Assembly (NCBI GenBank): GCA_965644295.1
Contig: CBFFRP010000277.1
Location: forward strand, 1-64,000
Origin: Paraphysomonas bandaiensis
Taxonomy: Eukaryota > Protista > Chrysophyceae
Length of the DNA: 64,000 nucleotides
Direction: 5' to 3'
How positions within the stretch are numbered: the stretch's first letter is position 1; every line of letters starts with the position of its first letter. Positions 20,951-63,000 of the stretch are shown here, one piece after another. The notes beneath the pieces were generated by a model. It was given only the letters and a program-made list of their open reading frames with translations. It ran no database searches and was not told where the DNA came from. Both the position numbers and the translations under genes were made by a program.

Positions 20951-21373
20951 TGCCTGACGCAGTGGTATTTATTGTGCTTGTGTTTGGTTTCCATATGAAC
21001 ATAATAAGTTCTAGTTCTGACCTCTTTTAAATTCGAATGAAGTGTTTGATTTCACTGGCGCAGTGGTAGTGGGGCTGTTTTGTTTGACAGAATTCGTTCT
21101 TCATCTTTAGCGCTTTATAGAAATTCATTACCGCATGAATTAAGCTACATTACAACAAACGGGGAATAAACTACTTAGGATGTTGAAACTATGTACTATG
21201 TTTCCAGACTCTACGCCACTAGGTATGCTTCACTATGCAATCCTTTGAGAATGGAAAGTTTATGTTACAATCTGCATGTCCTTTTTTATCAAGGCTCTGT
21301 AGCAATTAATTGAAAATCAATTAATTGCCATGATTGAAATAGGGACAACAAATCATAATTACAGTAATAATTG

Positions 21374-23087
21374 GATTCTCTGCCCTACGATGGCAAATAC
21401 AGTCCAACATAAAGTTTCACCCTATTAACCAGCTCCAAGCCCAATGTCTCTATTGAGACCGTGGCTGAGTCACATCAGTGTGCCCAGGGCCTTTTACACT
21501 CCCTTACTGCTGCATTTTGTTGACCACCACGCTTCCGACAAATTACCTGTCACACCATGTTGTACACGCTCCAAGCCCCCCTGCCTGGCCTTGCAACCTT
21601 CACCCTACTCAACTACTTCAGTTAAACCACGTGCCTGCACCAATGCAGCGCTGACCGCACCTATGTGCTATCCCCTCAGCAGACAACTTCGTCTCACCCA
21701 TCGCTTTCTACGGCTACAACCTCTCAGAACATGGCTCGTGCGAGCAGGCTCACGAAAACGACCCCCATGGACCCCCTATGCAATCACTGAATACTCTCGA
21801 TCCCTCTCAACTGTGCAACAGGGCTGCCTTCTGCCGCCCACTCAACCCAACCCAACATGGTTTGTCTGTGGTCTATGCACCCAGCAGGCTACCCCCTCAC
21901 CCTGTTCACCTATCACCCCCACAGCCCATCCATCTCATTGGATAGACACTGTATTCCGCATACGGTATACTCGACTACTGTACTACTGTGTCCTACAGGA
22001 TGTATACCATTCCGTGTACCTGTCTACCTGTACTGTTGGACACATCACCATGTCCATGTACCTGTCTACCTGTACTGTTGGACACATCACCATGTCCATG
22101 TACCTGTCTACCTGTACTGTTGGACACATCACCAGCTCTCTCTCTCTGTCCAACACACTCATATCATCACTGCAGTGTCATACACACACACAGTACACTC
22201 TACCTCCTCCTAGAAAACCCCCGGACAAACTATCGTCTCTCCCTTCGTCTCTGATACCTTGCCGTCATCTTCCTTACACACACTCTCTATGCCTCAGTCT
22301 GTACCCCCCTGCACCAACACAGACACTGACAAGGGCAGCTGAGGACGTCCGAGTGTCTCTTCCAGACCATCATCATCATCACGATCATCTCGTGCATAGG
22401 GCTATCAGAGTACTCGACCTCAGTGACTCTTGTTCTGTTGCGCAGTCTCACTCTCCTCAATCAGATGTTGCCTCTCTTGCACCATCACACTCCCTCTCGA
22501 CTCCCTGTAGCTGGACACACCGGATGACCCTCACATCCCACCCCTGTACAGCTATACACCCTCTTGCATGTGTTCTCTACCGCTGGCTAAGACAGCAAAA
22601 GAGCCGATTTCGACGCTTCTTCACAGTAGGCCATAACCTTTTGCAAGACCTTCATCCACATACCTCCGAGCCACTTGGAACAATGCCTAAAGGAAGGCCA
22701 CCAGATCGCCAATCTCAGAAGGGCATATTACTGTTTCCCCTAACTGCCATAAGGCTAATAAGACAGTCCCCGTGAGGTACATAAGGCTATCTATCATATA
22801 GCGAGTGGAGTCTCATCCCAAGAGGAGACCTCCAGATCACACGCGCCGGTGAGTCCCAGGACACACGATCATGGCGAGCCTCATAACACACACTAAGAAC
22901 GGAAGTGGTTGCACCTTGGTGCTTGCGGCGACGCACAAGCAGCTTCTGTAGCGTTAAATAGTAGGATAAAAGAGTTTGTATTGATTAGTTGCGGGTAGTA
23001 GTCTAACTAGTATGACTAGCATTCTTCTAGCCACTAATTGGTGCAGGCTTTCAACGCCTATTGCTAAATAATCAGACATTCAATATA
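21374..23087 (+). mobile_element. 5'-truncated non-LTR retrotransposon-like copy 1 (ORF C-terminal relic + conserved 3' UTR), 14-bp TSD
   Basis: TACAGTAATAATTG at 21360-21373 and 23088-23101. ORF relic with RKPPDK, PKGRPPD and PKRRPPD motifs. Family core at 22899-22967 and terminal block at 23054-23081. Confidence 0.8.
22015..22134 (+). repeat. 42-bp tandem repeat, ~2.8 copies, inside copy 1
   Basis: TGTACCTGTCTACCTGTACTGTTGGACACATCACCATGTCCA repeated. Confidence 0.95.
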
Positions 23088-23914
23088 TACAGTAATAATT
23101 GTATGCAGCTTGCTTACAAAAATAATACCGTCACTTTGACACTGTGGCAAGATATAGCTGGAGTGCGTATATTAGTTATTACACATAATGATAAGCGGTA
23201 GCAAGTTAAAAGTTTAATCATTAACATGTGTTCATTTATTAGGATTCATCTTAACATACATACACATGCATGCGTTTGCTGCAAATTAACGACAAATCTT
23301 AAGCATATATAAATTTCACCTAATCTCATAGTTCATTACAGTACCATCTAGTTCTCATCATTGCTTGCGCATGTAACAGAAGAGCAATAACTGTACACAC
23401 AATGAATGAACTTATAAGATAGTATATGTGAAATATAATGTTCAATGAAATATATCATGGACTGAATTAGTGATAGTATCTGTTGAGTATACGTAATCGT
23501 CATCATCATAATTGTCATTACTTTTAACTATTCCGTTGTGTGTGATGTTATATTCTGCATTATTATTCACTGTTCTACATTACTATGTTCATCACACTCT
23601 AATAATCACAACATTCTTATTATTACAACAAAGCTTAATTCTGCACTTTCATATGTGCCCATTCTGAAACTGAGAGACAGGTTATACAGTTTGCGGAGCT
23701 TTTGGAAGAAACTTAATTGACGATGTCTACCAGTATGTCAGATCTCAATCATTCCATCATTGAAAATAGTCATTTTTAACATCGAAACTGTTTTAGTACA
23801 AATAATAACAAATCAGACCTGTTGTTAGTTGTTAATGGAACATCATTTTCTGTTGTGAAAATACAATTGGTTTTCTCTCTCTATATCTACTAATTTATTT
23901 AATTCATCAACAAT

Positions 23915-24452
23915 ATGAGCGATAAGAAGCATATATGTACCAGAAGTAAATGTCTTATTATTAGCAAACTGTACCAGAAGTCACTGCGCGAGTTTTATTT
24001 AATGATTTGTTCCTGCAATTCAACTCTAAAGAATGCGAGGAAGCTTTGTAGTCAAACAAGATATCAGCAGCACATGGCAGATAACACATGCTGTGTTAAG
24101 TCTAATTCCAAACGACCTAGAGCATGCCAAACTGGTAAAATTACGGGACTTGAAATTCATTCAGTGTGTGTCAATAGAATTGCAGGAGGAAGATGAACAC
24201 CAGCTCGACCTCCACAGCGTTAAGCGTTCGTACATTGTTTGGCGAATACATCGCATATAGCACCCGATTGTCGGGCGTCATCTGGGCGACAATTCTGTTA
24301 TTATTCATAATGCTGCTTCGAAAAGGCAGTTATGAGGATTCAAGGTGGCAACAAATCCTCACTTACCCGGACGGAAAAGGATCGAATTAATATATCGTCG
24401 CCTCTGGGATGAAATTACTGTTGAGCAAGCTAAGTTGGCAGCTAAAGTGTAG
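23915..24452 (+). pseudogene. Possible decayed ORF of unknown family, interrupted by the 22-bp insertion
   Basis: Coding-like composition across overlapping short ORFs with several stops and frameshifts. No family recognised. Confidence 0.3.
23948..23969 (-). mobile_element. 22-bp extreme 5'-truncated copy 2 of the retro family, 12-bp TSD
   Basis: AAATGTCTTATTATTAGCAA is identical to the 3' end of copy 5 (51460-51479). Flanked by TGTACCAGAAGT at 23936-23947 and 23970-23981. Confidence 0.8.
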
Positions 24453-24788
24453 TGTATAGATACTTGAGTACGTAGTTTAGTACCAATTAAATTTCAATTC
24501 AAGTAATTGGGACAGCAAGTAATAATTGCAATTATAATTGACTGCAATCAGTGTCAATAATTACGCTACCCTGTTTTACACACTGAACCATACAGTACAA
24601 TACTCAATACTCCACAACTTTAACAAGCAATTTGGACTACGTTTCATATGCCGTCCTATTTTCAGGCAACGAAAAATAAGTTTATTCATATTACTTGTCA
24701 GTACATGTTACTATGTGTTACACTATATATGCATTATATAAAATATTACATGCTTCAACAAAAACTACTACTCACACACACATCTATA

Positions 24789-26451
24789 CTATTCTGTAGC
24801 GGACGAAGAAATAGTGGATACAAACTGACCAGCAGAAACGCCACGAATTCTCTTGTGTGAGTGTTTACTTCTCTGCCGAGGTCGTCCTTTGGGAATAACA
24901 TGGTTTGTCATACCAGGTCGTAGACTCAGACGGTACGACGCATCTCCACGCAGAGGTGCATGGGTGGCATCTGTCTCCACGGTGTCCTCCGGCTCTTCTA
25001 GACAGATATTGGGGGGGTTGAATTGATCCACATGATTCGTTAAGCAGGGGTCTGTATGACGAAGAAACCTGTTAACATAAACGACATCAAATGGCATATA
25101 AGACTATGACAATCGCAGCACGCACTCCCGTATCTCATCCACATTTGACGCCATCGCTGAGAGTTTATTGGAACCCTGTTTAACGTATATAGTTGATGTT
25201 GACTTCAGCTCAACTCCCACTAGTCTAGATATTACGCCAATGGTCTAATTGAAAGTTCATTAGAAGACCAATCATGCAGCCGATACTATTACACGCCCTA
25301 CCTCAGCAGGTCTCTCATTCAAGTCTTCATAGTAGACGACAATATGAGGTAAGCCGAGCGCGGCTGCAGTCTGCGCACAATTTTAGCCACCTCAGACGTA
25401 TATTGAAGACACTGACATGTAGCAGTTCGCTGGTCTTGGACCTAATCCTCTGTATATTTCGCTGGAGCTCTTTGAGGTCCAAGGGAGAGCTGTAAAGTTC
25501 ACGCTGCGCCTGCCCACATACCGCCTCCCATCCCGCCTGATCAACCTGCAGTACATCGTAATACACTTTTTAAGTGCAATTTCAAAATCTCCACACCTTT
25601 GACCATCCGTGTGATCCACACTTATCGGCTAGTTGCACAGCTCGAATCATAGAAACGGCCTGGAAAACATAATTCTTGCGAATCAATACCACCACACTGC
25701 AACGCATGAGGGCATAATCATCACACAAACTGGAAACATAAACCAACTGTACCGGTAGTTGTTATTTAAAAGATATGACGAAAACGACTTCAGTACGGTC
25801 GGATGACTGGGAAGTATGTACTTGGGACTAAAAAACTTCTCGTTAAATCCCACCAGCCGGAGGGACTTGTCAGCTGACAGCTTCGATACACTAGATACTA
25901 ATAAATTCAACTCATTAACAGCTGAAACCTCTTTCAAAGGGTTATTTTTATGCTGTCCAGCCAGAGACACCAAAGGCTCAGCAACTAAGCTTACGCCCGT
26001 GTTGTTGTTCAACATCGCCGTTAACCTGAATGATAAATATAACACGCTACGCCACAGTCACAGTAACAGAACCAACCATGTGCTTCCACTTCGCTCTAAG
26101 CATAGTATGGCAAGATGGCTGACGATATCAGTAGCCTGATTTGTCTCGTCTTTGTTTCGGGACAATAATTCGTGTTTTTCACTATAAAACGGAGGCGCTA
26201 TGGTGCATACAAGAAGACTGGATGCTATGAACACTCCCACTAATATCGCCAGAACAGTGTCGGAATGCATATCTGTATAATTCAATCACAACATCATGTG
26301 AGTGTATTGCACCTGAACTTCTATGACATCCAACGCACTCCAACAGCAACTGATGACAGATCGACAGACAGCAGCAGTATGGTATGCCGTATGCGATCAT
26401 ACATACCCGCATACCACAGCTATAGACCTGACTTCTATTTTTCTTCACCAT
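24789..26451 (-). CDS. Membrane-anchored sulfotransferase (Stf0/P-loop-like), multi-exon
   Basis: N-terminal TM (VLAILVGVFIASSLLVC). The 5'-PSB motif LCLERSGSTW|LTAMLNN is spliced across a GT-AG intron. Downstream ORF pieces 25683-26045, 25327-25566 and 24789-25097; exon structure approximate. Confidence 0.65.
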
Positions 26452-26815
26452 ACTGGAGAACGAATTCAGGTATTTGCTGTTTGTCTGAATAAAAAGCCGT
26501 AAAAAAATTGTGGTTTCAAGAAGTGTGATATTAAAAAGGCGGGTATTCGGTATTTCGTTATTTTACTTCTACAAAGTGAATACTGTAGTATCAAACCTTC
26601 GTGTATACCCACCTTATTTATGTGCTCGTTAGTAGGCATGTACAGTATCCTGTTTTTTTGAATCCTCAGCATGCGTACAGCTGAGAGTGTATGTTGTATA
26701 GGTGCCTATATGTGGAATGGCAGACCTTAACATCTCCAGTTCCATAGTTTAAACTAACAAGTAGCAGTGTTCCTGCCTCAGATTGAAATTGCTAATCGAT
26801 AACTATATCTTAGCT

Positions 26816-29800
26816 ATGTCATCATGGACAGGGGCCAGTGTGTGGTGCATGACCGATGTCCCGAACGGCAAATGGATCGCTTCAACAGTTATTAAAGCGG
26901 ATGATTTCAGCAGTGAAGGTAGCGGATGGGCCTTCTTGGTGTCCCTTGAAGATGGTGAAACAACAACTATATATACCAAACCAGTTGATAGATTTAATTT
27001 GGAGTTCGAGTGGATCAAGAGGCGTGAGGTCGATAGAGTAGATCACGTAAAGATAGACGATATGACATCTTTGACTCACCTCAATGAACCAGAAATAATA
27101 GAGTGTCTTTGGCAACGTTATAAGAAAGACTTTATGTACACTTCTACGGGGCCTATACTGCTGGCAGTGAATCCATATAAGCAGTTGCCGATTTATGACG
27201 AAACTACAATTGACAAATATTTTGACGCCGGTGGAAGTCAGGCAACTACAACGTCGGCGCTTTTTCCCCACGTGTTTCAAATATGCGACAATGCCTATAG
27301 AAAAATGCTTTACGATAAATTTAATCCTTACAAGCGTGAAAATCAGTCTATCCTTGTCAATGGTGAATCAGGTAGCACTTCTATATATTCCTGACAAAAA
27401 CTTTGTCTTAACAGTTAGAAACTATTCAGGGGCCGGAAAAACGGAGTCAACGAAACATTGCCTTCATTATCTGGCAGTTGTTTCCTCCAAAGTTGCTTCT
27501 TGTATGGGCTTGGACTCTGAGAGTGGTGATATAGAAAACCAGATACTGGCTTCTAATCCTATCACTGAATCACTTGGAAATGCGCGCACCACTCGCAACA
27601 ACAACTCGTCCAGATTCGGAAAGTTTATAGAGCTTGGGTACACTGCAGATGGTATAATTGATAGTGCCAGCATACGCACGTATTTGCTTGAGTCTGTGAG
27701 GGTTGTATCTCATATGGAGGGTGAACGGAATTTTCACGTGTTCTATGAAATTGCAGCTGCCTTGCCACCTGCCAAGCTGCAGGAGATGGGGTTTACGTCG
27801 ATAGCAGATTTTAAGTATACTAACTGCACTGTGAGTTCGAGGACGGTGGATCCAATGGGTGAGGAGTATCAGCATGACAAAGCGAACTACGAGGTATTCA
27901 TGGAAGCGCTTCAGACCATGAACGTGGACACTGACATCCAGGAAATGATTGTGCGTACAGCTGTGGCGGTCCTGCACATCGGCAATCTCACATTTACTGA
28001 GTCCTCTGCAGCAGGTGATGAGTCAGCACTATACGCCGCGGAGGCGATGAATCACGTTCGGCAAGTGTGTGACCTATTGGAGATCGAGGACGAGAACCTA
28101 ATGAGTGCAGTGGGGCGGAGGAGCATATCCGTTGCCGGTACAACCACTACCAAGACTCTAGGAGTGCAAGATGCTATGCATGCCAAAGATAACTTCGCAC
28201 GACATGTGTACAGTAATTTATTTGCCTGGGTACTTGCGGCGGTGAATGATGCTCTTCAGTCATGTTCAGGTGAAGCCATAGCCTCGCATATAGGTGTGCT
28301 TGATATATTTGGATTCGAGTTTTTCGAGAAAAATTCTTTTGAGCAATTATGTATCAACTATACGAACGAGAAACTCCAAGTGAGTAATTTGTTTGCAATG
28401 TATTGACACTAACGTCCTCTCAGGACCACTTCAACAACACTATATTTCGTACAGAGCAAGAATTGTATAAACAAGAAGGCATCGCTTGGACATTTGTCGA
28501 ATACCCCGACAATTCGCAGCGCCTGGATCTTCTAGAAAATAAGAAAACTGGCATATTCGCACTTTGTGACGAGAGATTGAAACTCAAGTCTGCCGTATCT
28601 CATGAGGGACTAGCAAAAGATATGTATGTGAAATGCGCCCACAGCCCTTTTTTCCATGCAAATGCACAGCAGAAGCGGCAACACCAATTCGTGATGCGAC
28701 ATTTCGCTGGAGATGTGCTTTATGACACAGCACTGTTTCTGGAGAAGAACCGGAGCGAGGTCGCACCGGAATTGGGGGATTGCCTGCGAGCCTCCATGAG
28801 CTCATTCGTACGCGAGCTAGCAGATGGATTTGACTCCGGTGCAGAATACAGTAGTCCCAGTCGGTCACTTTCATTTCGACTTAATTCCCCTGTAATGAAG
28901 TCTCAAAGTGAAAAAGTGATTGGAGGGCGACATAGTCCTCGATTCTCAGCCCCTTCTGCCTTAACGCCTGTGAAGGGCAAAGTATCGTTTCTTAAGGAAG
29001 AGGAGGGAACACCAACCCCAGGCAAGGGTATCACCCCTCCAGGCAAGCGTACCCCTGTGAAGTATAGCCCGGGTCTGTCACGTGCAACGAGCGCTATCAT
29101 GGGTACTGCCACCAGAGGACAGATGCGTTCCGGTCAATCCCCTAAGTTGATGCCTCTTCGAAGGAAACGTTTAAACACAGTGCTTTCGCAGTTTACAAAG
29201 CAGCTCCACGACCTGATGGTCTCAATCCAAGCAACCCGGAGCCACTTCATTCGGTGTATAAAGCCTAACGTATGGATGAAGCCTGACTCATTTGACCGCC
29301 AACTTGTCATGTCACAGCTTCGATGCGGGGGTACATTGGGGGCGGTGCAAGTTTTTCGGGCTGGATTTCCAAATCGCTTTGAATTTTCTTCCTTTGTCGA
29401 TAAATATTCTGCGTTAGCATTTGTGTCTGGAACTAATCCGCTTACGAAGGACTTTTATAAGCTGAGAAAACAAGCTATTCTAACAGGACAGGACTTTTTT
29501 TGGAGCGCTGCTAGCGAGATTCTCATGCGACTTGTCCCTGTAACGGAAGCCATTCTCACTGCTCTTGGGGTGTTACCACACAGTGGGAGTGCAGATTCCA
29601 TTCAGGGTGAACACAGTAGCATTGGTACCATCGAGCTCTCCTACTCGATGTCTGATGTGGACAACAGCAGACATGCGTTGGTCCAAGAAGGAATGTGCAT
29701 GGGTCGTAGCCAGATCTTTCTCCGTGCCCCAGTGTTTGACTACCTGGAGCAGTTGCTCCATCGATCATGTACGCTTGTTGCACAACTCGTACAGAGGCGG

Positions 29801-30764
29801 TGGCGTGCTCGCAGAGAAGTGAGAGGTGCAGGCACGAAATCTGCGCTGCAACTGGAGCGGAGCATGTCGTCTGTCAGCCGCATTGCATCAGCAGTAGCTT
29901 CTTTTTCAGAAAGAAAGCGACATTTGGCTATACACATCATTGCTTCCGTAGTCATAATTCAACGCAGGTTGCGAGTGTTTATTGCTTCGATTAGGTTAAG
30001 ACGTGCACGATTCATGAGCGTGTGGGTCTCATCTCACTACCGCGGATACCGAGCACGTGTTGGCGTACGACGTCTTAAGAACATCAATGCGGCATCTATC
30101 CAACGAGTTTGGCGTGGTCTAGTGCAACGTACCTGGTACCGGACACTGAAGAGAGGAGTGACAATTATTCAGCAGTGGGTACGCAGGATAAGGTACAGAA
30201 TTTTACGACGCAACGAGATGGCCCGGATGATAAGGGCAGAGTGGGGAACCACTCGTCTGCAGTCTCTGTGGAGGAGAAAGTCGGCTAGACGGACATCGTT
30301 GTCGTTAGCAGCGGCAAAGGTTGATATGCACCTGTAGTGAAGCGTAATATAAACTTTTGTTTAATGTTCAGGAGAATGAGATGAGAATAAAGAGAGAAGA
30401 AGAAATTCAGCGACGCGAGCAGATATTGGTATGTGTAGCTATTTCCAAATTGGTGTGTTTCACTTGGACTCAGGGACAATTGATCAAGAGGTTCGACGCA
30501 AACCCAAAGTTGATGGAAGCATTTATGCACGATGACTCTCTGGTCGATACTCTGGTTGCTCATGCTACTAAAGCTGAAGATTCCATTGAGACTAAACCTC
30601 CTGTTCGAAGTCCTCTACATATTGATTCTCAATCGTCATCGTCCCCACCATCGGATGATGTCGCTTGCCTGAAACAACAAATAGCAGAGTTGGAAGCTCA
30701 CGTGGAAAGCCTACAAGAACAGTTACAACGCAAACGTTCTGTTTTTTTCAGTTGTTGCACATAA
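26816..30764 (+). CDS. Myosin heavy chain (unconventional; motor domain, multiple IQ motifs, short coiled-coil tail)
   Basis: DDMTSLTHLNEP, P-loop GESG|AGKTES across an intron, switch I NNNSSRFGK, switch II DIFGFE, HFIRCIKPN, IQxxxRG repeats. 4 GT-AG introns. Confidence 0.96.
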
Positions 30765-32582: not shown

Positions 32583-33150
32583 TCTAAAGATGTGGCAAAT
32601 TAACCACCTTAATAATTATAGCATTTCTTGTTCTGTGTATCCATACTGTGAACTGTGCTGATGTACTCTCTGCAGATGTGGTGCTTGTACTGCTGTGTGA
32701 CTGCAGCACTGTGTACACACACAGAGTACCAGTATGTACGAACTGAAAAAATAGAAAAAAAAACTTCTCTATAAAAGAGACAAAAACGGACAGTACCCGG
32801 ACTTCGCACGTGGTCACCCACCGTACTACTAACCGGGCCAGATGCAACTTAACTTCCGCGAGCGGAACGAGAGCGGGTGCGGTTTGCATTGTATGACCGT
32901 CCATACCGACTAGACCTGATTTTAGATATAGAAATACAGTGTTTGCTGCTACATTCGTACAGGTACTGTAGGTAGGTACGATGTTGGTAGGTAGGTAAGT
33001 ACGAAGATTGGGAGACATCAACAAGAATATCGGGAGCAGTGATCAGTGTATCACTTCGATTAGTCCAAGATTACTTATTGACCTGCTGATGGATGGAGTT
33101 AAGATATACGTATATAACCGCACATAGTGACGGTATATCTGTATAGACTG

Positions 33151-43379: not shown

Positions 43380-44927
43380 ATGAATTGCAAGCTGTTGATT
43401 CATTTAATGCTCATATGCTCAAATGCACTGATCGGGACGGCTAGCGTTACAGGACGCATCAAGCATTTAATAGTGCTCATGTTGGAAAACAGGAGTTTCG
43501 ATCATATGTTGGGGTTTTTGAAGTCGATAAATAGTGACATAAACGGATGTCTGCCCGATGAGCCTGATTGTGATAATCCCATCAACCCACAAGATACGGG
43601 GTCAGAAACTGTTACTGTCGATGATACCGCCATAAATGTTCAAGTCGATCCTCACCACTCAATATCATGGACCACAGCACAGATATATGGCACGAATAAC
43701 GACCAACTACCTGCAACTATGGATGGTTTTATATCAGCCTATGCTGATGAGTTTCCTGATTCTCCGTCTAAAGGAAATGATATCATGAAGTGCTTTTCCC
43801 CTGAACATTTGCCTATACTGACCAACTTATCCTTGGAATACGGAGTGTTTGACGGGTGGTTCGCATCTGTTCCTGGTCCGACAATGGTGAATAGGGCATA
43901 TGCTGCCAGTGCAACTAGTAACGGAATGGGAACTAACGACGTGGAAGTTATAGCTCGTGGTATGCCTCAAAAGACAATGTTCAAGCAAATGCGCGAAATG
44001 GGGTTAGACTATCGAGTGTATTTTCAGGACATACCACATGTGTTAATGTTCGATGATATGCGAGAACCCGAAGCACTCCAAAAGTATCGGCTATTAGATT
44101 CACTGTATAGTGACCTGGAAGAAGGAAACCTTCCAGAGTTTGTTTGGATTGAGCCGGCATACCTAAATTCCGACACTCAAATGTCTACTGATCAGCATCC
44201 CGATCACGATGTGTCTTTAGGAGAATCGTTAATACGAGATATTTACGAAGCTCTACGAGCCTCTGTATTGTGGGAGGATTCTGCTCTATTGATTACGTAC
44301 GATGAACATGGTGGCTTTTTTGATCACGTTCCTCCACCCACGGGTGTTCCGAACCCTGATGGAAAAAACGCGACTGACGACCCATTTGACTTTACACGAA
44401 TAGGTGTACGAGTACCAGCTGTCTTGATCTCCCCTTGGGTTCGGAGAGGATCCGTATATCATGCTGCCTGGACCCCTGCGTCCGCAATGTCACCAGGTGC
44501 CTCTGCGGATCGTTCACATCATATTTTACACCAGCACAACGCCCCGAGTCAGTATGAGCACTCCAGCATTATCTCCACAGCTGTGCATGAATTGTTTCCC
44601 CCTAGCGCTGGGTACCCCTCACCAGAATACTTGACGAAGCGTGACGAGTGGGCACTGTCATTTGGCTGGGTTTTTGATGAACTGGATGTAGTCCGCACAG
44701 ACTGCCCTGAAAAGTTGCCTGCCGTGTATAACGCAACCAAGACTTCTCAACTCCCACAGCAAGATGGAAGTGCTCAGCTGTCTGATTTGCAACAGGAATT
44801 GCTGGCTTTAGCAGCTGGAGTGGACGGGAACATTACGATGGTCCTTGAGGATAAGTCGTCATGGACTGAGCGTGAAGCTGCAGCCTATATTAAGCGCGTA
44901 ATTGAAAACAGAGTTCTATTTCTTTGA
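43380..44927 (+). CDS. Non-specific phospholipase C / phosphoesterase family, secreted, intronless
   Basis: Signal peptide; IKHLIVLMLENRSFDHMLG, WFASVPGPTMVNR, DQHPDHDV, ITYDEHGGFFDHVPPP, RIGVRVPA, YEHSSI. Confidence 0.95.
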   Translation: MNCKLLIHLMLICSNALIGTASVTGRIKHLIVLMLENRSFDHMLGFLKSINSDINGCLPDEPDCDNPINPQDTGSETVTVDDTAINVQVDPHHSISWTTAQIYGTNNDQLPATMDGFISAYADEFPDSPSKGNDIMKCFSPEHLPILTNLSLEYGVFDGWFASVPGPTMVNRAYAASATSNGMGTNDVEVIARGMPQKTMFKQMREMGLDYRVYFQDIPHVLMFDDMREPEALQKYRLLDSLYSDLEEGNLPEFVWIEPAYLNSDTQMSTDQHPDHDVSLGESLIRDIYEALRASVLWEDSALLITYDEHGGFFDHVPPPTGVPNPDGKNATDDPFDFTRIGVRVPAVLISPWVRRGSVYHAAWTPASAMSPGASADRSHHILHQHNAPSQYEHSSIISTAVHELFPPSAGYPSPEYLTKRDEWALSFGWVFDELDVVRTDCPEKLPAVYNATKTSQLPQQDGSAQLSDLQQELLALAAGVDGNITMVLEDKSSWTEREAAAYIKRVIENRVLFL

Positions 44928-45465: not shown

Positions 45466-45890
45466 GTAGTAAATGTCTAATTATTAACAAAATAGGCGTG
45501 TAAGAGTCAGAACTATTTAAGTAACTAGCGCTTAACTCTGACAGCCTACTAATTTGTGCCACGAAAGCTGCTTGTGCGTTACCGCAAGTACGAAGGTGCA
45601 ACCACTTCTGCTCTCTGTCCTTTATGTGACCCAGCCCAGATGCTTGACTTCAGTAGGCAGCCCTTGAGGGGGGGGGCATTCCCGGATATCTGTTTATTCG
45701 TCAAGGACCAAAGACGTCTACACACGTGTCCCTGGTACCTGGTACCACACAAGCATTTGGCTATGAGTGGGCAGAACAATACCTGCTGACTGACTATGTA
45801 TGCGGCTCACGTTAGTTTATCGGAGATATATCACCGGTAATTATTCCCCAAAACACAACGAAAAAGTGTGAGTCGGACTTTGTTGAGGGA
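45466..45890 (-). mobile_element. Retro family copy 3 (subfamily A, ~425 bp, candidate non-autonomous element)
   Basis: 3' end AGACATTTACTAC (minus strand) and core at 45544-45612. Colinear with copy 7 along its length. No TSD found. Confidence 0.8.
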
Positions 45891-50018: not shown

Positions 50019-50096
50019 TAATAGCCGTTATTTTGTGGTATATGTATTTTTAGTTGTGCGTTTAGATAACTAATATGTGTTGTGACCTATATGCAT

Positions 50097-50452
50097 ATTG
50101 AATGTCTTTTTATTTAGCAATAGGCGTTAAAAACTCGTTCCGATATAGCGGCTAGTTGAATACTAGTCTACTAGTAAGCCTCTACCCATAACTAATCAGC
50201 ACAAATTCAATTATCCTACTATTTAACGCTACAGAAGCTGCTTGTGCGTCGCCGCAATCACCAAGGTGCAACCACTTCCGTTCTTGATGTTGTGTGTGAG
50301 TTCGCCCTGCTCGTGTGTCTGAGGACTCACTGGCGCGTGTTGTCCGGGGGTCTCCCCTTGGGATACGGTTCCGCCTGGCTCTGAGGTACCGGGTTCTGTA
50401 TTAAGGTCCTGAGTGTACCGAGCACTAGATGTGTGGACTGAGAGGTTGATGA
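50097..50452 (-). mobile_element. Retro family copy 4 (subfamily B, 5'-truncated) with perfect 71-bp TSD
   Basis: 50026-50096 is identical to 50453-50523. The minus strand encodes ...PKGRPPDNTRQ*, then the core (50213-50281) and 3' end AGACATTCAAT. Homologous to copy 1 at 22808-23085. Confidence 0.9.
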
Positions 50453-51454
50453 CGTTATTTTGTGGTATATGTATTTTTAGTTGTGCGTTTAGATAACTAA
50501 TATGTGTTGTGACCTATATGCATGTGGAAGTATTTGGATGCTTTTCTTTTATATTTAATTCAAGCTGCGTGTGTCCCCCATTCCGTGAGTGTATATCTAG
50601 GGCAGAACCTATTTGGCGGCTTCTGATAGCACAATGCTGAGGCTTGCAGATTGTAAGCAATGAAAAGCTGTAGTTTTTGTAGGTATTAGAATTATTACCG
50701 TTAATCGTAGAACACTGTATTATGAGAACTGATGTTGTGATAGTGACTAAAGACTATCATAATTGAAGCTTATTGTGAAGCTAAAATATATTTAATATTG
50801 ACCGTATAAGATCGTGGCTATCTAGAGCGTATGAAAATGATTGGTAGTTGATAGTTGAGATGCATAACATGAATTTGTCTAATGCCAATGAAGAATATGT
50901 AAGAATGATTATAATTTATATAATTTAAACATTGAGTGTATATCAACTTCAATTATTTAAGTTAAAATTGACACACTATACATTTGGTAGGCTACATGTC
51001 GCAGTAGTACTGTTGGTCAGAGTGGTGTCAATACAATTGCGATAGTGTTAGTGTTGTAATATATATCTACTATATAGTGAGAAAGCCACTCATAATTACA
51101 TCATAGTTAGAGTACTAATCACTCCATAACCGATTCCTCAGTGTGTGTATGTTATTCTGGAGCTTCCTTACAAAACAAAGCAAATACCTATATACCTAAC
51201 TTGTTTGTAGCTGCCCGAGGTTCTAGGATAATAGAGGTGGTGGCGTATAGCCGACACCATCATATAGCTCTCTGCATATTTTAATGTGAAGTTTATATCG
51301 AGCTCTATAAGTTCTGCGAGGAAACGCGGCAAACATCGCAATCGTAATAACCATCTCTCAGGTTATTTAATCAGGGCTGTGGGCACGCTGTTTGGACTCG
51401 ATGAGCCAGGTCTGAATACCCTAGTATCATACATACAATGAAGCAAAGGCCTCA

Positions 51455-52207
51455 GTAGTAAATGTCTTATTATTAGCAATAGGCGTGTAAAAGTCAAAAC
51501 TGTTGTAGTATTGCAATTAAACTACTGAAACTATTATTTAACTCTGATATCCTACTATTTAGCGCTACGAGAGCTGCTTGTGCTTTACCGCAAGCACCAA
51601 GGTGCAACCACTTGCAATCTATTACTCAAAGCAAACGCAGTGAGCAAGCAGAATGTTGGTACACCTAACTTTGAGCCCTTAAGTAAGTGTGAGAGCTGTC
51701 CACGGACGTTCGTGTAGTCCTTCAGTGTCAAGAGGCACGGTTAATAAGGGGGGCCCCTTTAAGGTGGCGGGGTCCACGAAGCATAAGGGAGAGTCAGAGT
51801 GATGTGAACGAACGATAGTGTTCCGAGTGAGATGGTGCGAGGTAGAGGCGTAGAGTCTGTAGAATCTGTATAGACTGCAGTGTATCTAAGTTGAACGTAA
51901 ATAGAGCTGGTGGAGTCTCCTACTCTGGGGTTCGCGTGGGGGGGGTGAGAGTGTTAGAGGAGTATAGGAAATATGTTCATTCACTCAACTGTTATTCTCT
52001 GTTGAGGCGCCATCGGGTCCGAAGTTGGCGGACTTATGGGTTGTGAGGGATACTTGGAGCCCGAATTTTGGAGGGTTGTTGGGTATAAGGCACAAACCAT
52101 CTAGTCGATCCTAAGAGTCGGAGGACCAGCAATTGTCTTCTTCGTCGGATTCGCTGCTTACTACGTTTTCTGGAAGAAAGTCTGGCTAGAACCCTCGATA
52201 CTGGGTT
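51455..52207 (-). mobile_element. Retro family copy 5 (divergent, 5'-truncated), imperfect ~35-40-bp TSD
   Basis: 3' end AGACATTTACTAC and core at ~51549-51613. Flanks are AATACCCTAGTATCA..CAATG.AGC.A.GGCC at 51415-51451 and 52208-52240. Confidence 0.8.
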
Positions 52208-52261
52208 AATACCCTAGTATCACGCAATGCAGCGAGGGCCGTTATCAACGATTAAACCATC

Positions 52262-52387
52262 GACGCACAAGCAGCTTTCGTAGCGTAGAATAGAAGGATG
52301 TCAGAGTGAAGCACTAGTTAGCTAAATTGTTGTACTGCATCAGTTTTCCTCTTACACGCCTATTGATAATAATAAGACATTCACTAC
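52262..52387 (+). mobile_element. Retro family copy 6 (126 bp, truncated inside the core), imperfect ~42-46-bp TSD
   Basis: GACGCACAAGCAGCTTTCGTAGCG...ACGCCTATTGATAATAATAAGACATTCACTAC. Flanks 52220-52261 and 52388-52433 are direct repeats. Confidence 0.8.
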
Positions 52388-52794
52388 TCACACAATGCAG
52401 CGAGGGGCGAGGGCCCTCAACGATGAAACCATCAATGTCATGGCCCTTAGGTCAAGAATAAACTGCAGCACCTGAATTTTATCTATTTGACTTCTAGTAA
52501 GTCCAGCCTTTGGAATAGGATAACATTGCAATAAAAATATTTGTCGTAATATAGTAGTGCAGTAGCTAGTTCCATTTAGTAAAATAGAGTAGAAATGTGT
52601 TCTCGACTTTGTCAAGCTATCAAATTTAATACATCATACAATGTTGTAATTCGTGAAAAGATAAAAGAAAAGGAATAATAGTACATAAAACATTCCTTAA
52701 TTTTCACTCTGGATCAATTTCTGCTTATAATAATGGTTTGTGTAAGTTCACGAATCATATTGAGCACATTTTTTACAATTTAAGTACAATAGAA

Positions 52795-52940: not shown

Positions 52941-52949
52941 AGCACAAGT

Positions 52950-53747: not shown

Positions 53748-54907
53748 CGCGTTGAGATGTGAAGAAACAGTGAGAGTGTCATATGGGTGAAGAGGGCGGC
53801 TTTGTTACAGTGATTCCAGTGCACAGAGATGGGGGTGTACAGTATACCATCGTATACACTGCTGTATATGATTTACTACACAATATCACTGCTGTGCACT
53901 GTGTATACCGTATACGGCGGTTTATACAGTACATGACTACGTATAGTGTCTTGAGGATATCGCTCATCTGCTGGATCTATGCAGGTATCCACAGCACCAC
54001 AGATCCAATGCAGTGGTTCACTGCATGTTCATTGCATCTCACTATATATGAGTATCTGATTGCTGCTTTGATACAGTGTACCTGAAAGAGGACAGAAATA
54101 GCTAACAGGCAACGTTTCTCTATTCTGTGGATACTCTATTCTCCTGAGCCCTCACTATCGAACTCAGCGTAAGGCGTGCATTCACTCATCTTGAGATTCC
54201 ATACGACACATGCCTATTCTACACTCACCGGATCATATCTCTGAGAATTATAATCATTATTACATGTTGCAAATATTTCATTTTCAAAGTAAGTAACAAA
54301 TGTATGTAGCATGTAGTATTAGTACGTCTAGTTTTGGCGTGTATATCCTTAACCATAGAGTATATACTTTAAAATTGAATAAGATACACTCTCTGCTATA
54401 TTCTGTATATTGTAGGTGGGTTCTACTAATGATAAAATGTAAATAATAATGATGCTATATCAGTGTCATCAGCAAGCCTTGTTACTTCATACTTGTTTTT
54501 ATTAAAAAGTATAAACAAATGCACTGTAATAGACTTTATATATTTAGCTTAACAGTTAGTGTGTAGCTATAAAGTAGAATTTGTACTATCAAACTAACTG
54601 GACTAGAAATCTTTCTCTCCGGTTATAGTGTGTACAGGAAGTTAACAGCAAGCTATCCATAACTCATCAGGAGGTGCACATATAGATGCTGCCGTAAATA
54701 AGCCATGAAGGGTTTATACCAGCGTATAATTACATAGCATTGTTAGCTCCCACCTATTCACTCGCTATAAAACTACATCAGCAGTACAGAAATAAAATTG
54801 ATACAATTTCACAGCATTCATAATTCATAACTACACACTAGAATAAACATTATCGGCAAGATACACCCATACATACTACTATATGTGATCCAAAAATATT
54901 CAGTTGC

Positions 54908-57093: not shown

Positions 57094-58531
57094 TGTGTCA
57101 AATCAAGCTATCAAGTGCGCAATATCGATAGCGTTACAGTGATATCTGTAGAATACACAGGCACTAACCACAGACTGATAACCCGCAATGTAACTTATTT
57201 CACGTCATTTAAAATTAACACCATGGCACAACGGTCATAATGTAACTACAATGTGCAGATGATTGACTTGGGCCTGATAATCCATTGCGATCTATAGCGC
57301 ATGTTCTGCCTATCGTACACAGCAGTATATCGTCGTTATCTATTGCACCAGCATACAGTAGCTGCAGTATTGTTCAACAGCGTACCGTATGACACTGAAA
57401 CTCTTTCAGTTTCATTTTTTGAGTGTGTGACAGTTCTACAACGTATACACTGTATACCAGTATCAATAGACAGATGCACCGTATCTTGTGGAGAGATCGA
57501 AGAGTAGCTGGTATGTCTTGATATTCATGGATATTTCCACCTTTTGACGTTCATGGGCGGATGTGGGAAAGGGAAAGTACCTAGAGCACATGTATGTACA
57601 GTAAGAATTTGTTACTGAGCATGAAAAGTTAAAAAGCAGCGTCCACACACTTTCCATCAACAGGTAAACATGTACAATCTAAACGAAGCGACTACAAATT
57701 AAAATTTGATACGAACATGAGCTCTTAGTTCGCATTTAAGTTATTGGCACGATTCACTCTTCAAAGTTATTTTCGTACATTCCTTACATGTGTACTTCGC
57801 TGCAACTTATCTCTCATGACGTTTGTCCTTTTTGTGAATGGATTACTACACCACCAACCAATGTCGAGTGCTTTGTCTCTGAATAACCATCGTTATGATG
57901 AATATAAGAAGAAGGCAGCAATTGGTCGCCACGCCTAGAATACACATACAAGACGAAGTCTTTTATATTCGAATTCATAATATATAATATACAGATGTAC
58001 AGATTGAATGAGACTTATCTCATCGCGTACTATGTGCTTGGAAGTCGGCTGTAGAATCCTGACTAAACTTTCATTTATTTATCTACTATTGGCTCTATGA
58101 TAGCAATTGCACGCATAATATACGGTATTGAACATTGAACAAGTACTTGTACAAAGATTCTTATTCTCGCGACTATATTCGCTCCAACACGATAAATTCT
58201 GATAGCAGTTTTGAATAAGTTAGTTAAGAGTAGCAAAATATTCTTTCGTATAAGGTAGATTATAACTGTTGAATTGTGACACAATTGCTGCGTATAATAA
58301 AGGTGGATCATATGTTATTAGCATCATGGGCAAATTGCATCTCAGAATTCAAACGCTATAATAGAAGACAAACTGGATAGCAGCTAGTATTATTAATTCC
58401 TGAGACAGCAAAATGTCATGGGGGCTCACATTAAATAAAAGGACGTATGTTCATTAAAATGCTGCACTTATGGCCAGTCAATATAAGAATTAATAGTGTC
58501 ATACTTCCCGGTCCAAACACACCCAACGACA

Positions 58532-58911
58532 TTAATTTGGATTTCGAAGAACCAAAATAACAGAGTCTCCTCTTAGAAACATTTTACTGATATATCTATC
58601 TTTATTCACAGGGCGCGCCTTCTTGGCACCTTTTCCTGTCTTGGGTATTTCAGTCCACATTTCTTTGACATTTTCCAGGACCATGTTACAATGTCTATCA
58701 AATGCTTTCACTCTAGCAAGCAGTTTGTGATTATTTCTGCAATTAATCAATACCTACGTTCAAGTTATTACATTGAATGAATTTAATTTTTTTCATTTAC
58801 CTGAGTGTTTTGCTTGACACTGTGCATCAGAATTGACAGTGGTCCTGTTTCAAATTCCTTTTCCTCATCTTTGTCAACCTTAACTGAGTAAAAAGATTCC
58901 TTTGCTGCCAT
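58532..58911 (-). CDS. SNRPD2: Small nuclear ribonucleoprotein Sm D2
   Basis: [22 protein letters not shown]|[33 protein letters not shown]...[15 protein letters not shown]. One intron. Confidence 0.98.
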
Positions 58912-59339
58912 TGGAGTACTGAGGCGACCGAATAGTGACAGTGGGGTCCGCTTAAAAGTAACCAGCATCACTGCAACAGACCAGCACTGACCGGTATAAA
59001 TGTCGTATACTCTGTATACAGCGGTATACTTATAGATTCGTAGGTGAACCTCCTGTGATCCCCGATTCAAATCCCTACAATGTATATAACTCCGTATGTG
59101 ACTGTATAACGTTTATGGTCTGCTGGTCGTCGAGTAATTTTTCCTTCCCATCACTCTAGAACTCCACACGACTACGTCGTACATCGAACTACATACATCC
59201 ATATGATATGATTGCACTTCATCTACAACGATCTGCACACTAGTGTTTTTATCTGTGTGTGTCTCTTGTCGCATACTTTTGTCCTGAAAAGTTTAATGTT
59301 ACATACTAGGAACCATACGTAACATACTGTCACAGAAAT

Positions 59340-61027
59340 ATGTTTGCTTGTAAAGAGATTATGCGGGCGCCTGAATTTATGAGAACATTAGTTATTGATG
59401 GTGTTGATGAGATGCGGAAGGTGTATATGGGCGGGGAGATGTGGATAGAATCTAATGAGTGGAGGTAAGCTCTTACGGATATATTCATACGATAACATGA
59501 CACGAATTAATTTATTTCAGATCGACTGATTTGGGAGATATTCTTCTACTCTCAGAAAATAAAAATGAGAAGCTTGACGTGGTGCGTACCTGTGAGCTGT
59601 TAATAATAAGGGAATAATCATATATGTATCAGGGGGTTCTAAATATTGATGTATCTGCCTATGGGCATGTTCGCGTGAAACTGTCAATCAAGAGTCCTTC
59701 AGAGAAAAATGAAATTTTAGTTGGACAGGTATTCCGTGTCTATGTGCCCAGCTTGGGTTTTGTTAGTCGCACGCGCTTGCGTCTGGAAAAATTGGAGTTC
59801 AAGATGGAGAATTATGAGGAAACAAAGTCGACACAATATATAAAAACTTCCCCAAGAGTATACAAACAGTTTGAGTTTAGTGTAAGAGATAGTGATGGAA
59901 TTATTTCACATCCAGGCTTGGACGGCGTCGAGTTTTCATTAACATTGTTGTTCGCGGACAATAAGCAACCAGTTCCTCCTACAAACCATACTTCCTCTCA
60001 AAAAACTGTAGCCGTAAAAAGAGTTAAACTTCTAAATGGGATATATATAGTTACACAACGACTCAACGAAGTTGCTGGCAATCACGACAACAGAATGTTT
60101 ATGAGCCGTATCAATATCAGAGCTTGGGGCAACAAATGGTGTTTTGAATCTGCACCATATTTTGGCAGGACGAGACAAGGACCATCTGATAAGAAAGGAC
60201 AGGAGAGGAAAAGAATGGCTCAGTTCAGAAGGGAATTGAAGGCTCACCAGTTGCAACAGATACGAAGTCAGGTGCTGGGGAAACCGGAAGAAGCTAGAGT
60301 TGACGAATCATCCGTGCAGAAGACGGCATTGGCCGATATGTATGAATCGCTTAATTCCCTTTTGGTTGTGTATCACAACTTGATGAGTTCTCCAAATCAA
60401 TTTTTATTTCTAGCTAAAATAGAGGAGGCAAAAGCTGATGTTCGAAGAGCACATGCACTTCTTGACCAAGCAGTGAACAAGTTATTTAAGTTTCCTCATT
60501 CTTTTCCTGAAACAACCGCGCCGAGTGATGATATCTGCGAAGATGATTGGGAGCGCCAAGCAGTAGCCCAGTTAGTGAAGCTGAATCAGTCTCGTAGTGA
60601 TGCAACACTTTCTGATGATGTCGACAAATCGGATGTAAGTCATGATTCTGCAGTGCAGAACCTAAAAGTACAATTTCGAACAGCCCTGCCTACTGAAAGC
60701 CGTGTTTCGTGCGACAATATTAGGCTCCCGCCCAATGATACAACCAGATTGTTATGGGGTGAGACTTGCAATGGACATCAAAAGCCAAATGCCTATCTCC
60801 TATCTCAATTTCCAGCAAATGAATCACAGGAATCGTCATCACAGGAGTCATATGTGGATTCCCAACAAGGTTCTCATACACAGAAGCGGAATCAGCCTTC
60901 TACAAATAATGATATCGCTGCGCCAATCGACAAACAGTGTGAAAATGGCCAGTTGAAGCATGTCGCGCTCAGCGACGACAAAGATCATGAGCATGATGTG
61001 AAACGTCAGCGGCTTCAGCATCAGTGA
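59340..61027 (+). CDS. Hypothetical protein, possible CudA/p53-like Ig-fold DNA-binding domain
   Basis: Two short upstream exons plus a long ORF. FSLTLLFADNKQPV...RLNEVAGNHDNRMF resembles CudA-like domains (recollection, not searched). Basic NLS-like segments. Confidence 0.6.
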
Positions 61028-61931
61028 GCCAAGACGTATCGTAGTTACTTTTTTTTTGACACATGACTGACGCACACAGTTCAATTTCAATGTGATCCAG
61101 ACCCACTATCATCTTAATGTGAAATGATGCACAACCTCTACACCTACACGGGTGTCGTCTGGAATCGCAAGCTACCATATTCTATGTGCAATAAAGTCGT
61201 TTTGTGAACAATACGAAGTTGCTCTGTTTACTGTAGTGTTATTTAATGATATATTGTATTATATGTAGTCGTGATAGCTTTTATAACGCAGAATTGTCCT
61301 AGGACGACGTGAAACCCACCTAAAAGTTACCGCAATGTTGCACTCAATGCTGTATCGAGTGTTGGTACTGTCAATGGGATAGTTTAAAGATGAAGAATTA
61401 TCAAGAGTTTATTATGAATTAGGGTTGCGATGACGCACTTCATTTTGCAGATCGTTGGATGGTATTATCTGGTGCCTTTCTGGCACATTTATCAAGTTTC
61501 ACATATTCTAATTAGGAACATAGATCGTATCTGTGAATTGACTTGTGTTTGGTGTTGGCCTTGATATTGTAGTATTCGGCGGTCCTACATGGACTGTGAA
61601 AGTGGCATCAATCATTTGTTTGGATTATAATTATGACGAGATATATGATTATCCCCATTTTGTCTCAAAAAAGTTTTTTTTTACCTGATTTTGTCTCATC
61701 ATGGCGCTCATATCAGCACCGGGCAAATATAGACATTCAACTTCAATATTCTGTTGAACAGAAGCTCACTTCTATCTTTATTGTGATAATGACAGTCGTA
61801 TGTATGTATGTGATTTCATTATAGTACACAATTATAGAGAAACCACAATCATGAGCCAACTATCAAGAGCAGATCAGCTAACACTCAAGGTTATATTCCA
61901 TCCTTCGATTGCTATAGAAGATAATAACAAG

Positions 61932-63000
61932 GTCAGTGCAAGCGATCTATCTTCATATCGGACTTCGAAACAACTTCAAGAATATTACAGGAGAGTTTAA
62001 GTGCCATATCTGATGCTGTATATAGGTGGTTAAGAGCAGTGGCATCCAGGAACCCACTAAGGAGTGGGTAGACACAGGTGCAGTTGATTCTGCTTCTATT
62101 ATTACTGGTAAACGTACCAGAAGTTCAGTTGATTATCGCTTGTAAGTATAGATAGCACTTTGTAATATATATAATAGTACTATCTATAGTATGCATGTAT
62201 TAACCGTTACATTAACCGTTACATTCTCACTTTTTGGACCTGTAACTAATATAAAATTTATTAAATGTTTCTAAAAACATGTTCTCTTTACACCTACTAC
62301 ATTATTTATTGCAAAACATATAAAGATATAAAGAACACAACTTAAATCGGCATTTTCAAAATTTCACCAGGTTTAGAGCGTTTCTGCAGGTTTGTTCATA
62401 ACATCATATTAGATGAATGCTAGAAAAAACTAATTAGACCTCTACCTGTGACTAATCAGTACACACTTTATTTATCCTACTATTTAACGCTACGGAAGCT
62501 GCTTGTGCGTCGCCGCAAGCACCAAGGTGAAACCACTTTCGCTCTCTGTCCTTAAGGCTTAAGGTGAACATCCCGGATGCTTGACTTCAGCAGGCAGCCC
62601 AATACCCCGGTCACCCTTCAGGTGGGCTCTGTCCCGGATACCCTTGAGGTGGGCCTATTCCCGGATGCCTGTTTATTCGTTAGGGCCCAAAGACGTCTAC
62701 ACAAGTGAGACACTTATTGGTGTCCCTTGTACCACACAAGCATTCGGCTATGAGTGGGCAGAAGAATATCTGCTGATTATGTTTGTGGCTCACGTTAGTG
62801 TCCCAGAGAGAGAATCTCTCCGGTACTTATCCCCCAGATCACCACGAAAAGGTTCGAGTCCGACATTGTTGAGGGGATGTCAGTGCAAACGATCTACCTT
62901 CCTAACCAGGACTTCGAAACAACTTCAAGAATATTACAGGAGAGTTTAAGTGCCATATCTGATGCTGTATATATGTGGTTAAGAGGGCAGTGACATCCAG
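61932..63000 (+). repeat. ~120-bp direct repeat pair (61932-62049 and 62879-63000)
   Basis: GTCAGTGCAA.CGATCTA.CTTC...GGACTTCGAAACAACTTCAAGAATATTACAGGAGAGTTTAAGTGCC...CATCCAG occurs twice. Confidence 0.93.
62374..62878 (-). mobile_element. Retro family copy 7 (subfamily A, ~505 bp, candidate non-autonomous element)
   Basis: Core at 62475-62542. Colinear with copy 3 and sharing its 5' end. Internal ~27-bp duplication at ~62615-62668. The 3' terminus is degenerate, so the left boundary is approximate. Confidence 0.8.

Follow-up and report, generated by a model that had tools for sequence, protein, structure and literature searches.

Stringent pairs of long and short interspersed elements (LINEs and SINEs) carry a common 3' tail, the eel pair UnaL2/UnaSINE1 being an example reportedly due to the work of Ohshima and Okada and of Kajikawa and Okada. 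A LINE accompanied by shorter elements that share its 3' tail is a textbook mechanism; the system considered here is a fresh example of it, in which the autonomous element is unusual. It was met in the chrysophyte Paraphysomonas bandaiensis (assembly GCA_965644295.1), in the first 64,000 nt of contig CBFFRP010000277.1 (hereafter the window), where seven dispersed repeats share a 3' module made up of a conserved core and a terminal box. These repeats are very probably insertions made by target-primed reverse transcription, with the machinery drawn from a young family of giant LINEs bearing an apurinic/apyrimidinic-type endonuclease (APE), whose 3' untranslated region (UTR) the shorter elements share. 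This reading rests on the demonstrated sharing of 3' modules, on a partner that encodes both reverse transcriptase (RT) and APE, and on 3' anchoring, 5' truncation, target site duplications (TSDs) and high copy number.

Like UnaL2/UnaSINE1, the system joins an autonomous LINE to shorter elements through one conserved 3' block with a predicted stem-loop, has a short simple-repeat tail in place of poly(A), and consists of 3'-anchored, 5'-truncated insertions flanked by TSDs. Unlike UnaL2, it has no sequence or structure match to the Rfam family RF00436 ('UnaL2 LINE 3' element'), and, in contrast to pairs of the UnaSINE1 type, its partners are without a tRNA, 5S or 7SL head, one of them being a 1.7-kb mosaic that bears an open reading frame (ORF). 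The window's short repeats are now tied to an autonomous partner, and the youth and probable activity of the whole make it a good natural system for the study of 3' recognition in a protist.

The LINE itself resembles the RNase-H-bearing I, Tad1, Ingi and Nimb LINEs in the order of its APE, RT, RNase-H-like motif series and CCHC knuckle and in its short-repeat tail. It differs from them in its single giant ORF, whose N-terminal part is longer by about 1,000 residues and includes a SET domain, and in an RNase H that is putative, confirmed neither by Pfam nor by a PDB profile or AlphaFold and seen in motifs and a weak profile-profile match. The nearest named protein, one of 2,773 aa from Bipolaris maydis that carries RVT_1, Exo_endo_phos_2 and RNase_H, is a distant match covering 13% of the query (E 2e-14), and the closest solved structure, human LINE-1 ORF2p, matches in the RT region only (E about 1e-7). 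Dualen/RandI elements are giant LINEs of green algae and cryptophytes. The present element is likewise a very long single-ORF protist LINE with accessory domains; unlike Dualen/RandI, it has SET as its accessory domain, and Pfam finds no second (restriction-like) endonuclease in its C-terminal 724 aa. An example of the Dualen/RandI kind has 2,543 aa (PMC5029228). The original prediction, a note made from the letters of the window, pointed to diatom elements like those of the Ambal clade of Repbase, which is listed as protist-only (PMC4438587) and is also named in PMC5753468 and PMC4455052; both are protist elements without long terminal repeats (non-LTR), and the present LINE is at most a possible member.

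A parallel for the SET domain is found in other classes of retroelement. A DNMT has been captured by dinoflagellate and charophyte retrotransposons (PMC5890265), and an MBD by arthropod Copia (PMC6673714). As in those elements, a host-type chromatin-modifier domain stands in frame in the polyprotein of the LINE and has been kept over deep divergence; unlike them, the captured domain is SET and the carrier is a LINE. With the in-frame SET, domains of histone-methyltransferase type join the few epigenetic enzymes that retroelements are known to have captured.

The autonomous partner

The genome searched was the 62.5-Mb, 669-contig assembly to which the window (contig C277) belongs. With Pfam RVT_1, 150 scored matches were obtained among 309 RT candidates. 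In all cross-checked cases (contigs C11, C15, C25 and C28), a match of one class (about 60 bits, 879-885 nt) is followed by a core 2.37 kb downstream on its own strand. Nine 10-kb stretches were fetched as LINE loci. Their open frames run to 2,795-3,021 aa, the longest inside the fetched stretches being 2,942 aa, and the frame stops about 55-65 nt ahead of the core in all eight stretches that reach it. A Pfam domain scan of two of these ORFs placed three domains above their curated cut-offs: SET (34.8 bits against 22.4), Exo_endo_phos at residues 1067-1304, N-terminal to the RT (38.6 and 30.5 bits against 24.5), and RVT_1 (55 bits against 29.6). The full order in the ORF is three diverged N-terminal repeats, SET, APE endonuclease, RT, RNase-H-like motif series and CCHC.

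The LINEs form at least two families, each about 8.7-9.4 kb long with a single ORF of about 2,800-3,000 aa. In the first (LINE1), locus L062 spans 8,701 nt, keeps an open frame of 2,823 aa whose first ATG comes after only about 16 nt, and has an 11-12-bp TSD; its 5' end recurs in L065 next to other flanking sequence. LINE1 copies have five different start points and one common 3' end, at 98-99.7% mutual identity; those other than L062 and L065 show four 5' truncation points, and three of them have TSDs of 10-14 bp. A long variant (L067 and L061; 9.4 kb) carries a 910-nt module in place of the first 215 nt of the L062 type. The 5' module of LINE1 thus comes in two alternatives, 910 nt with a 42-bp tandem repeat (L067, oriented positions 180-1089) or 215 nt (L062, oriented positions 512-726); the long one is also present in the 1.7-kb non-autonomous family, to which it gives the start codon. 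The second family (LINE2, locus L063) encodes a protein 66% identical to that of LINE1, and its DNA can be aligned with LINE1 over the last ~358 nt only (80%). The two ends of a LINE are mutually unrelated, and there are no LTRs or terminal inverted repeats. With its RT, N-terminal APE, common 3' end with 5' truncation and variable TSDs, the element is an APE-type non-LTR retrotransposon. One insertion was seen in nested form (L066:5461-5679 and L066:9578-9925; G000:C15), where a 5'-truncated LINE1 sits within the core of an element of the copy 7 type (see below) and its 14-bp TSD, AAGCACCAAGGTGC, is the reverse complement of core sequence.

The original prediction had read the window's repeats as a LINE clade with non-autonomous partners that share one 3' module and insert by target priming, and in substance this has been borne out, since elements encoding an RT do end in the core: ORFs with SET, Exo_endo_phos and RVT_1 stop just 5' of it. 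Their C-terminal end, ...HPKGRPPDQ, accounts for the PKGRPPD motif that had been noticed at an ORF end in the window. The 3' anchoring and TSDs also recur elsewhere in the genome, with duplications of 10-14 bp at nine elements of the copy 1 type and at four LINE1 copies. What needs qualifying is the uniformity of the partners, which share the 3' module and are otherwise heterogeneous: copy 4 is a truncated LINE and copy 1 a LINE-derived mosaic, and only copies 3/7 and 5/6 have apparently unrelated bodies.

A 3' module shared across the genome

A 25-nt core pattern, with at most one mismatch, had 1,443 matches in the genome against none for its reversed control, and the recurrence of the core is beyond chance. 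When the core end was required together with the terminal box, 744 matches were found at a gap of 100-125 nt and 128 at a gap of 60-95 nt, and the control again gave none for either. At least 872 cores thus lie at one or the other of two fixed distances from a box, which reveals two discrete 3' UTR architectures and 3' anchoring throughout the genome. The long-type 3' UTR (~195 nt) is common over its whole length to both LINE families and to copies 1, 4 and 7, and the short type (~150 nt; copies 3, 5 and 6) has only the core and the terminal box in common with it. A shared core of ~65 nt had been predicted from the window; it is indeed retained in all copies that are long enough, with the correction that long-type elements share their full ~195-nt 3' UTR and not the core alone. 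Rfam holds no family that matches the core or the 3' UTR. Outside this genome, the core was sought in metagenome contigs of the JGI, where only two chance matches in GC-rich bacterial contigs turned up and no core-bearing relatives were found.

The seven copies in the window

When the family members and the fetched LINE loci were all compared with the window by BLAST, the seven predicted intervals came back, and no more of this family. Copy 1 (21374-23087, + strand) is a full-length 1.7-kb non-autonomous element between perfect 14-bp TSDs, TACAGTAATAATTG, at 21360-21373 and 23088-23101. It holds an ORF of 443 aa (21444-22775, +) that is of low complexity and ends near the PKGRPPD motif, and, at 22014-22135 (+), the 42-bp tandem repeat also found in the long LINE1 variant, whose copy number differs from element to element. 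Its conserved 3' UTR core lies at 22899-22969 (+), with the conserved block GTAGCGTTAAATAGTAGGATAA 3' of the predicted hairpins, and its terminal box, ACGCCTATTGCTAAATAATCAGACATT, at 23054-23080 (+), followed by the tail CAATATA at 23081-23087. Copy 2 (23948-23969, - strand) is an extreme case of 5' truncation in which 22 nt of terminal box are left between perfect 12-bp TSDs, ACTTCTGGTACA (23936-23947 and 23970-23981). Copy 3 (45466-45890, -), from an old SINE-like family, consists of a ~280-nt body, core, short-type 3' UTR, box and TACTAC tail. Copy 4 (50097-50452, -), which belongs to LINE2, has a perfect TSD of 71 bp (50026-50096 and 50453-50523). Copy 5 (51455-52207, -) has a ~590-nt body, a core with a GTAA loop, a short-type 3' UTR, box and TACTACT tail, and its TSD, imperfect and about 33-38 bp long, lies at about 51415-51452 and 52208-52240. 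Copy 6 (52262-52387, +) is a short-type element truncated at its 5' end inside the core, with an imperfect TSD of about 37-41 bp (52225-52261 and 52393-52433). The TSDs of copies 5 and 6 overlap, so that one site has been hit twice. Copy 7 (62374-62878, -) has the body family of copy 3, a long-type 3' UTR and a degenerate 3' end. A TSD was sought at copies 3 and 7 and none was found.

Most of what had been said of these copies from the window holds. Six of the seven finish in the box, ACGCCTATTG..AATAA..AGACATT, and a short tail, copy 7 being degenerate as noted; the tail after the box is CAATAT(AT)n or YACTACT in these six. Direct-repeat flanks, predicted for most copies, are present as TSDs at five of seven (copies 1, 2, 4, 5 and 6), and the core is kept in every copy of sufficient length. 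The prediction of at least three dissimilar subfamilies 5' of the core also agrees with the comparison, in which copies 1/4, 3/7 and 5 have no detectable similarity to one another. Likewise, neither the RVT_1 search of the genome nor BLAST of the LINE loci against the window found an RT in the window. Across the element system the TSDs measure 10-14 bp, about 35-40 bp (51415-52433) and a perfect 71 bp (50026-50523). This range of 10-71 bp among the checked data suggests that the spacing of first- and second-strand nicks is unusually loose or variable.

The shorter elements and a proposed mechanism

Copy 4 matches the final 356 nt of L063 at 97.5% identity and is a 5'-truncated LINE2. Copy 1 is a mosaic in which both ends derive from the LINE: over its first 872 nt it agrees at 98% with the 5' module of the long LINE1 variant, over its last 277 nt it agrees at 91% with the 3' end of LINE1, and the 560 nt in between have no similarity to the fetched LINEs by blastn or tblastx. 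The 5' end of copy 1 recurs in six other independent insertions, further relatives being truncated, and TSDs of 10-14 bp flank nine elements of this type. A genome search with the 3' 198 nt of copy 1 gave 1,917 first-look candidates, among which all 40 scored matches are 99-100% identical. The 443-aa ORF, in which Pfam finds no domain, begins at the ATG of the long LINE1 variant. Of 17 copies that retain this start, 11 have the frame open; coding selection was considered and set aside, as this number is about what youth alone would give, and with a divergence of just 1-2% the openness of the ORF is uninformative.

Copies 3 and 7 have a common ~280-nt body, which, like the body of copy 5, has no match to either LINE family. 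Genome relatives of copy 3 are 73-79% identical, and 38 of the 39 other top-scoring matches begin at position 1-4, which marks copy 3 as a discrete short unit. The family of copy 5 is old, with relatives at 67-77% identity that start at many points along its 5' part. To judge by these comparisons, copies 3/7 and 5/6 represent older families that appear unrelated to the LINEs upstream of the core; copy 6 is perhaps a 5'-truncated LINE. An Rfam search at gathering level across the window found no tRNA, 5S or 7SL head on the partner elements, and when the 5' ends of these two copies (3 and 7) were searched with the threshold relaxed to E 10, no match and no such head appeared either, so that the partners are not canonical SINEs. 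A ribozyme like that of hepatitis delta virus was also considered for the 5' end of copies 3/7 and dropped, there being no Rfam match on the element strand at E up to 10, which is weak evidence, as sequence models detect such ribozymes poorly.

We propose that the LINE 3' UTR, with its core about 55-65 nt after the stop, its end box ...CTAATAATAAGACATT and a short simple-repeat tail rather than poly(A), would serve as a common handle. Carriers of this 3' UTR would be copied to new sites, in the form of 5'-truncated LINEs (copies 2 and 4, perhaps 6), and the 1.7-kb mosaic (copy 1) and at least two older families with unrelated bodies (3/7 and 5) would be copied likewise. The LINE RT may recognise the core, the box or both on the RNA, as in a 'stringent' LINE, and may so mobilise the shorter elements in trans.

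Structure and role of the 3' module

The core had been described as structured in the original prediction. For 15 distinct cores, RNAalifold predicts a hairpin with a GNRA loop, a second and very small hairpin, and an outer helix, P1, in which CGGAAG pairs with CUUCUG; in copy 1, P1 would pair 22899-22906 with 22942-22949 around two small hairpins, one of them GCGA-capped. In the alignment 93% of cells are paired, versus 35-49% with a slid partner, a control that is biased as the structure was derived from the same sequences. Among 100 listed full cores, two P1 pairs pass through G-C, G-U and A-U at family level, as a maintained helix predicts.

A number of observations weigh against the mechanism as we propose it. 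Pairs changed on both sides amount to 3 of 19, a figure equalled by 32 of 500 shuffles, the RNAalifold covariation term is 0.04 kcal/mol, and the folding energy of the core is not better than that of shuffles (z -1.7 to +1.2). Two candidate proofs were rejected. The GNRA 'swap' from GCGA to GTGA, GCAA or GTAA consists of CpG-decay transitions that keep GNRA automatically, and the compensatory A-U pairs in P1 fall where CpG occurs on both strands, so that double decay mimics compensation. A structured RNA core is plausible but unproven, and the word 'structured' is not supported as it was used. Distant relatives are of the same bearing. With LINE residues 880-2100 as query against ENA, JGI and Logan assemblies, three relatives of 2,805-3,392 aa were found, with SET, APE and RT, at 33-35% aa identity; they align over their full length with the two local families, with hundreds of invariant columns. 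Their contigs are without the core in the 3' UTR, and the two that reach the 3' end carry CTAATAATAAAAGATGTT and an AAT-like tail, near the local CTAATAATAAGACATT. The relatives thus keep the terminal box and not the core, which makes the box older than the core, and the box rather than the core may be the recognition site. The box also contains AATAA-like strings and could instead serve 3'-end processing. Finally, the family proportions rest on pattern listings of cores, and LINE families outside the sample could be the source of the bodies of copies 3/7 and 5.

On another account there is no independent SINE-like partnership, every copy is a truncated or internally deleted piece of a LINE of this clade, and the bodies of copies 3/7 and 5 are 3' parts of unsampled subfamilies. 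It draws on copy 4 as a plain truncated LINE2, on the LINE-derived ends of copy 1, on the many 5' positions at which relatives of the copy 5 body begin, as truncated LINEs do, and on a sample of nine LINE loci out of 309 RT candidates. Against it stand the near-constant start of the copy 3 relatives, which indicates a discrete short unit, and the single 5' end of six independent insertions of the copy 1 type, whose 560-nt middle is unlike the fetched LINEs, and the bodies of 3/7 and 5 match neither LINE family; we regard this account as unlikely. A different division of labour would leave recognition and priming to the box and tail, with the core serving the expression of the element (transcript stability, export, termination of translation or re-initiation after the stop, or 3'-end processing). 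The constant start of the core after the LINE stop codon fits such a role, as do the distant relatives that have a terminal box without a core, and copy 2, which was inserted with 22 nt of box and a TSD, points the same way, with the reservation that it marks the start of reverse transcription and not the site recognised. Against this stand the non-coding families 3/7 and 5, which retain the core with no ORF to terminate, and the fixed core-box spacings in 872 elements, and a core for expression is in our view doubtful. Lastly, the repeats might be a dispersed family of host functional RNA genes or of DNA transposons instead of retrotransposon insertions, as the core is unlike any known retroelement RNA in Rfam. 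However, Rfam has no match of any family whatever for it, the copies show 3' anchoring with 5' truncation and TSDs of variable length, terminal inverted repeats are lacking, and an ORF with RT and APE is physically joined to the core, which leaves this explanation extremely improbable.

The giant open reading frame

The SET domain of the LINE ORF aligns to the SET domains of KMT2C/D. Among five proteins, at 30-66% identity to the reference LINE1 protein, residues N963, D964, N972, E994, E995 and Y1000 do not vary; both Asn of the signature and the tyrosine of EEL...Y are kept, and each of the five has Asp in place of the His of the NH motif. By its Pfam match and signature motifs the domain would be of the SET-domain lysine methyltransferase type. 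The ~870 residues N-terminal to it hold three diverged repeats with the motifs IPxxGYCxY ... W ... H(F/Y), and in the local LINEs the Cys of this motif is kept in the third repeat only. The repeats resemble an OTU/papain-type protease, an assignment that finds no support, with no match in Pfam (E up to 5), in a PDB profile search or in Foldseek, and an AlphaFold predicted local distance difference test score (pLDDT) of 55. 'ORF1' genes upstream in L070 and L071 are of low complexity and mutually unrelated, and were treated as spurious.

After the RT, the motifs FTDGS, YAYEL, (S/T)DC, SHPE and ADA are invariant, forming a D-E-D-H-D series, and are followed by the CCHC knuckle. No RNase H hit was found in this C-terminal region by Pfam or PDB profiles (AlphaFold pLDDT 40), and hhalign against true RNase H domains gave a weak match (probability 7.9%, E 0.0044) in which D-E-D are aligned. 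Beyond the knuckle the protein runs out in a low-complexity tail rich in Pro and Arg.

An exhaustive search with the N-terminal and SET region found two N-terminal matches only, one of them a fragment from the same organism at 97%, together with about 125 ordinary SET proteins. Among the latter were two further SET-bearing polyproteins, P0148 (3,923 aa), a retroelement polyprotein with RNase H, RT, SET, OTU and Ulp1 protease domains, and P0227 (1,195 aa), a Ty3/Gypsy-type pol with SET at its C-terminus; SET has thus been captured by retroelements more than once. In the paper library that was searched, no account of a SET-bearing LINE or of SET capture by retroelements was found, which is no proof of novelty. 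It is possible, and we put it forward tentatively, that the LINE belongs to an undescribed giant lineage with a chromatin toolkit, in which SET and protease-like repeats with Cys/His motifs, selected down to the relatives at 30-35%, might mark or unmark the chromatin of insertion sites or help to escape silencing, and that its 3' RNA handle (core and box) might be parasitised by at least three unrelated non-autonomous lineages, with more than 1,400 copies in 62.5 Mb.

Activity and related organisms

Contigs of four public runs were aligned to window positions 20300-24300. In two other organisms (31-mer sharing 0.91 and 0.46) the depth in the core bin is far above that of the element body, which is in turn far above that of the unique flanks, depths here not being copy numbers. 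At least four different sequences enter the core from upstream in the related organisms. In the 0.91 organism the alignment of one contig breaks off at 21359, next to the left copy of the TSD, leaving 94 of its letters outside, and a contig of exactly equal depth covers 23143; this is suggestive of a copy 1 site that may be empty there. A probable RNA run has contigs on copy 1 and none on its flanks, which suggests transcription of the family. The element system is young and probably still active, given that its copies are 98-100% identical, its ORFs open and its TSDs perfect, with a possible empty site in the sister strain. Just downstream of copy 1, at 23248-23650, lies another high-copy repeat, at which the contig depth in the sister organism is 100-400 times that of the flanks; part of it, 23417-23642, is also found beside one LINE locus. 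At 63700-63794 a short stretch resembles sequence flanking one of the fetched LINE loci and is probably another dispersed repeat.

Neighbouring genes

The repeats lie among host genes. A complete 5S rRNA gene (32785-32904, -; Rfam RF00001, 100.7 bits) is unrelated to them. A phospholipase C/phosphoesterase gene (43380-44924, +) stands between repeats. Its best named homologues come from Paraphysomonas at 51% and from Triparma and Bolidomonas at 47-49%, with no diatom among the closest; on this thin evidence the host would be a stramenopile of ochrophyte type and not obviously a diatom, and the public runs that contain its DNA are marine. A myosin motor gene (27195-30337, +) occupies two frames, with an intron as the probable cause of the split. 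A formin (FH2) gene at 9395-17161 (+) encodes 2,588 aa.

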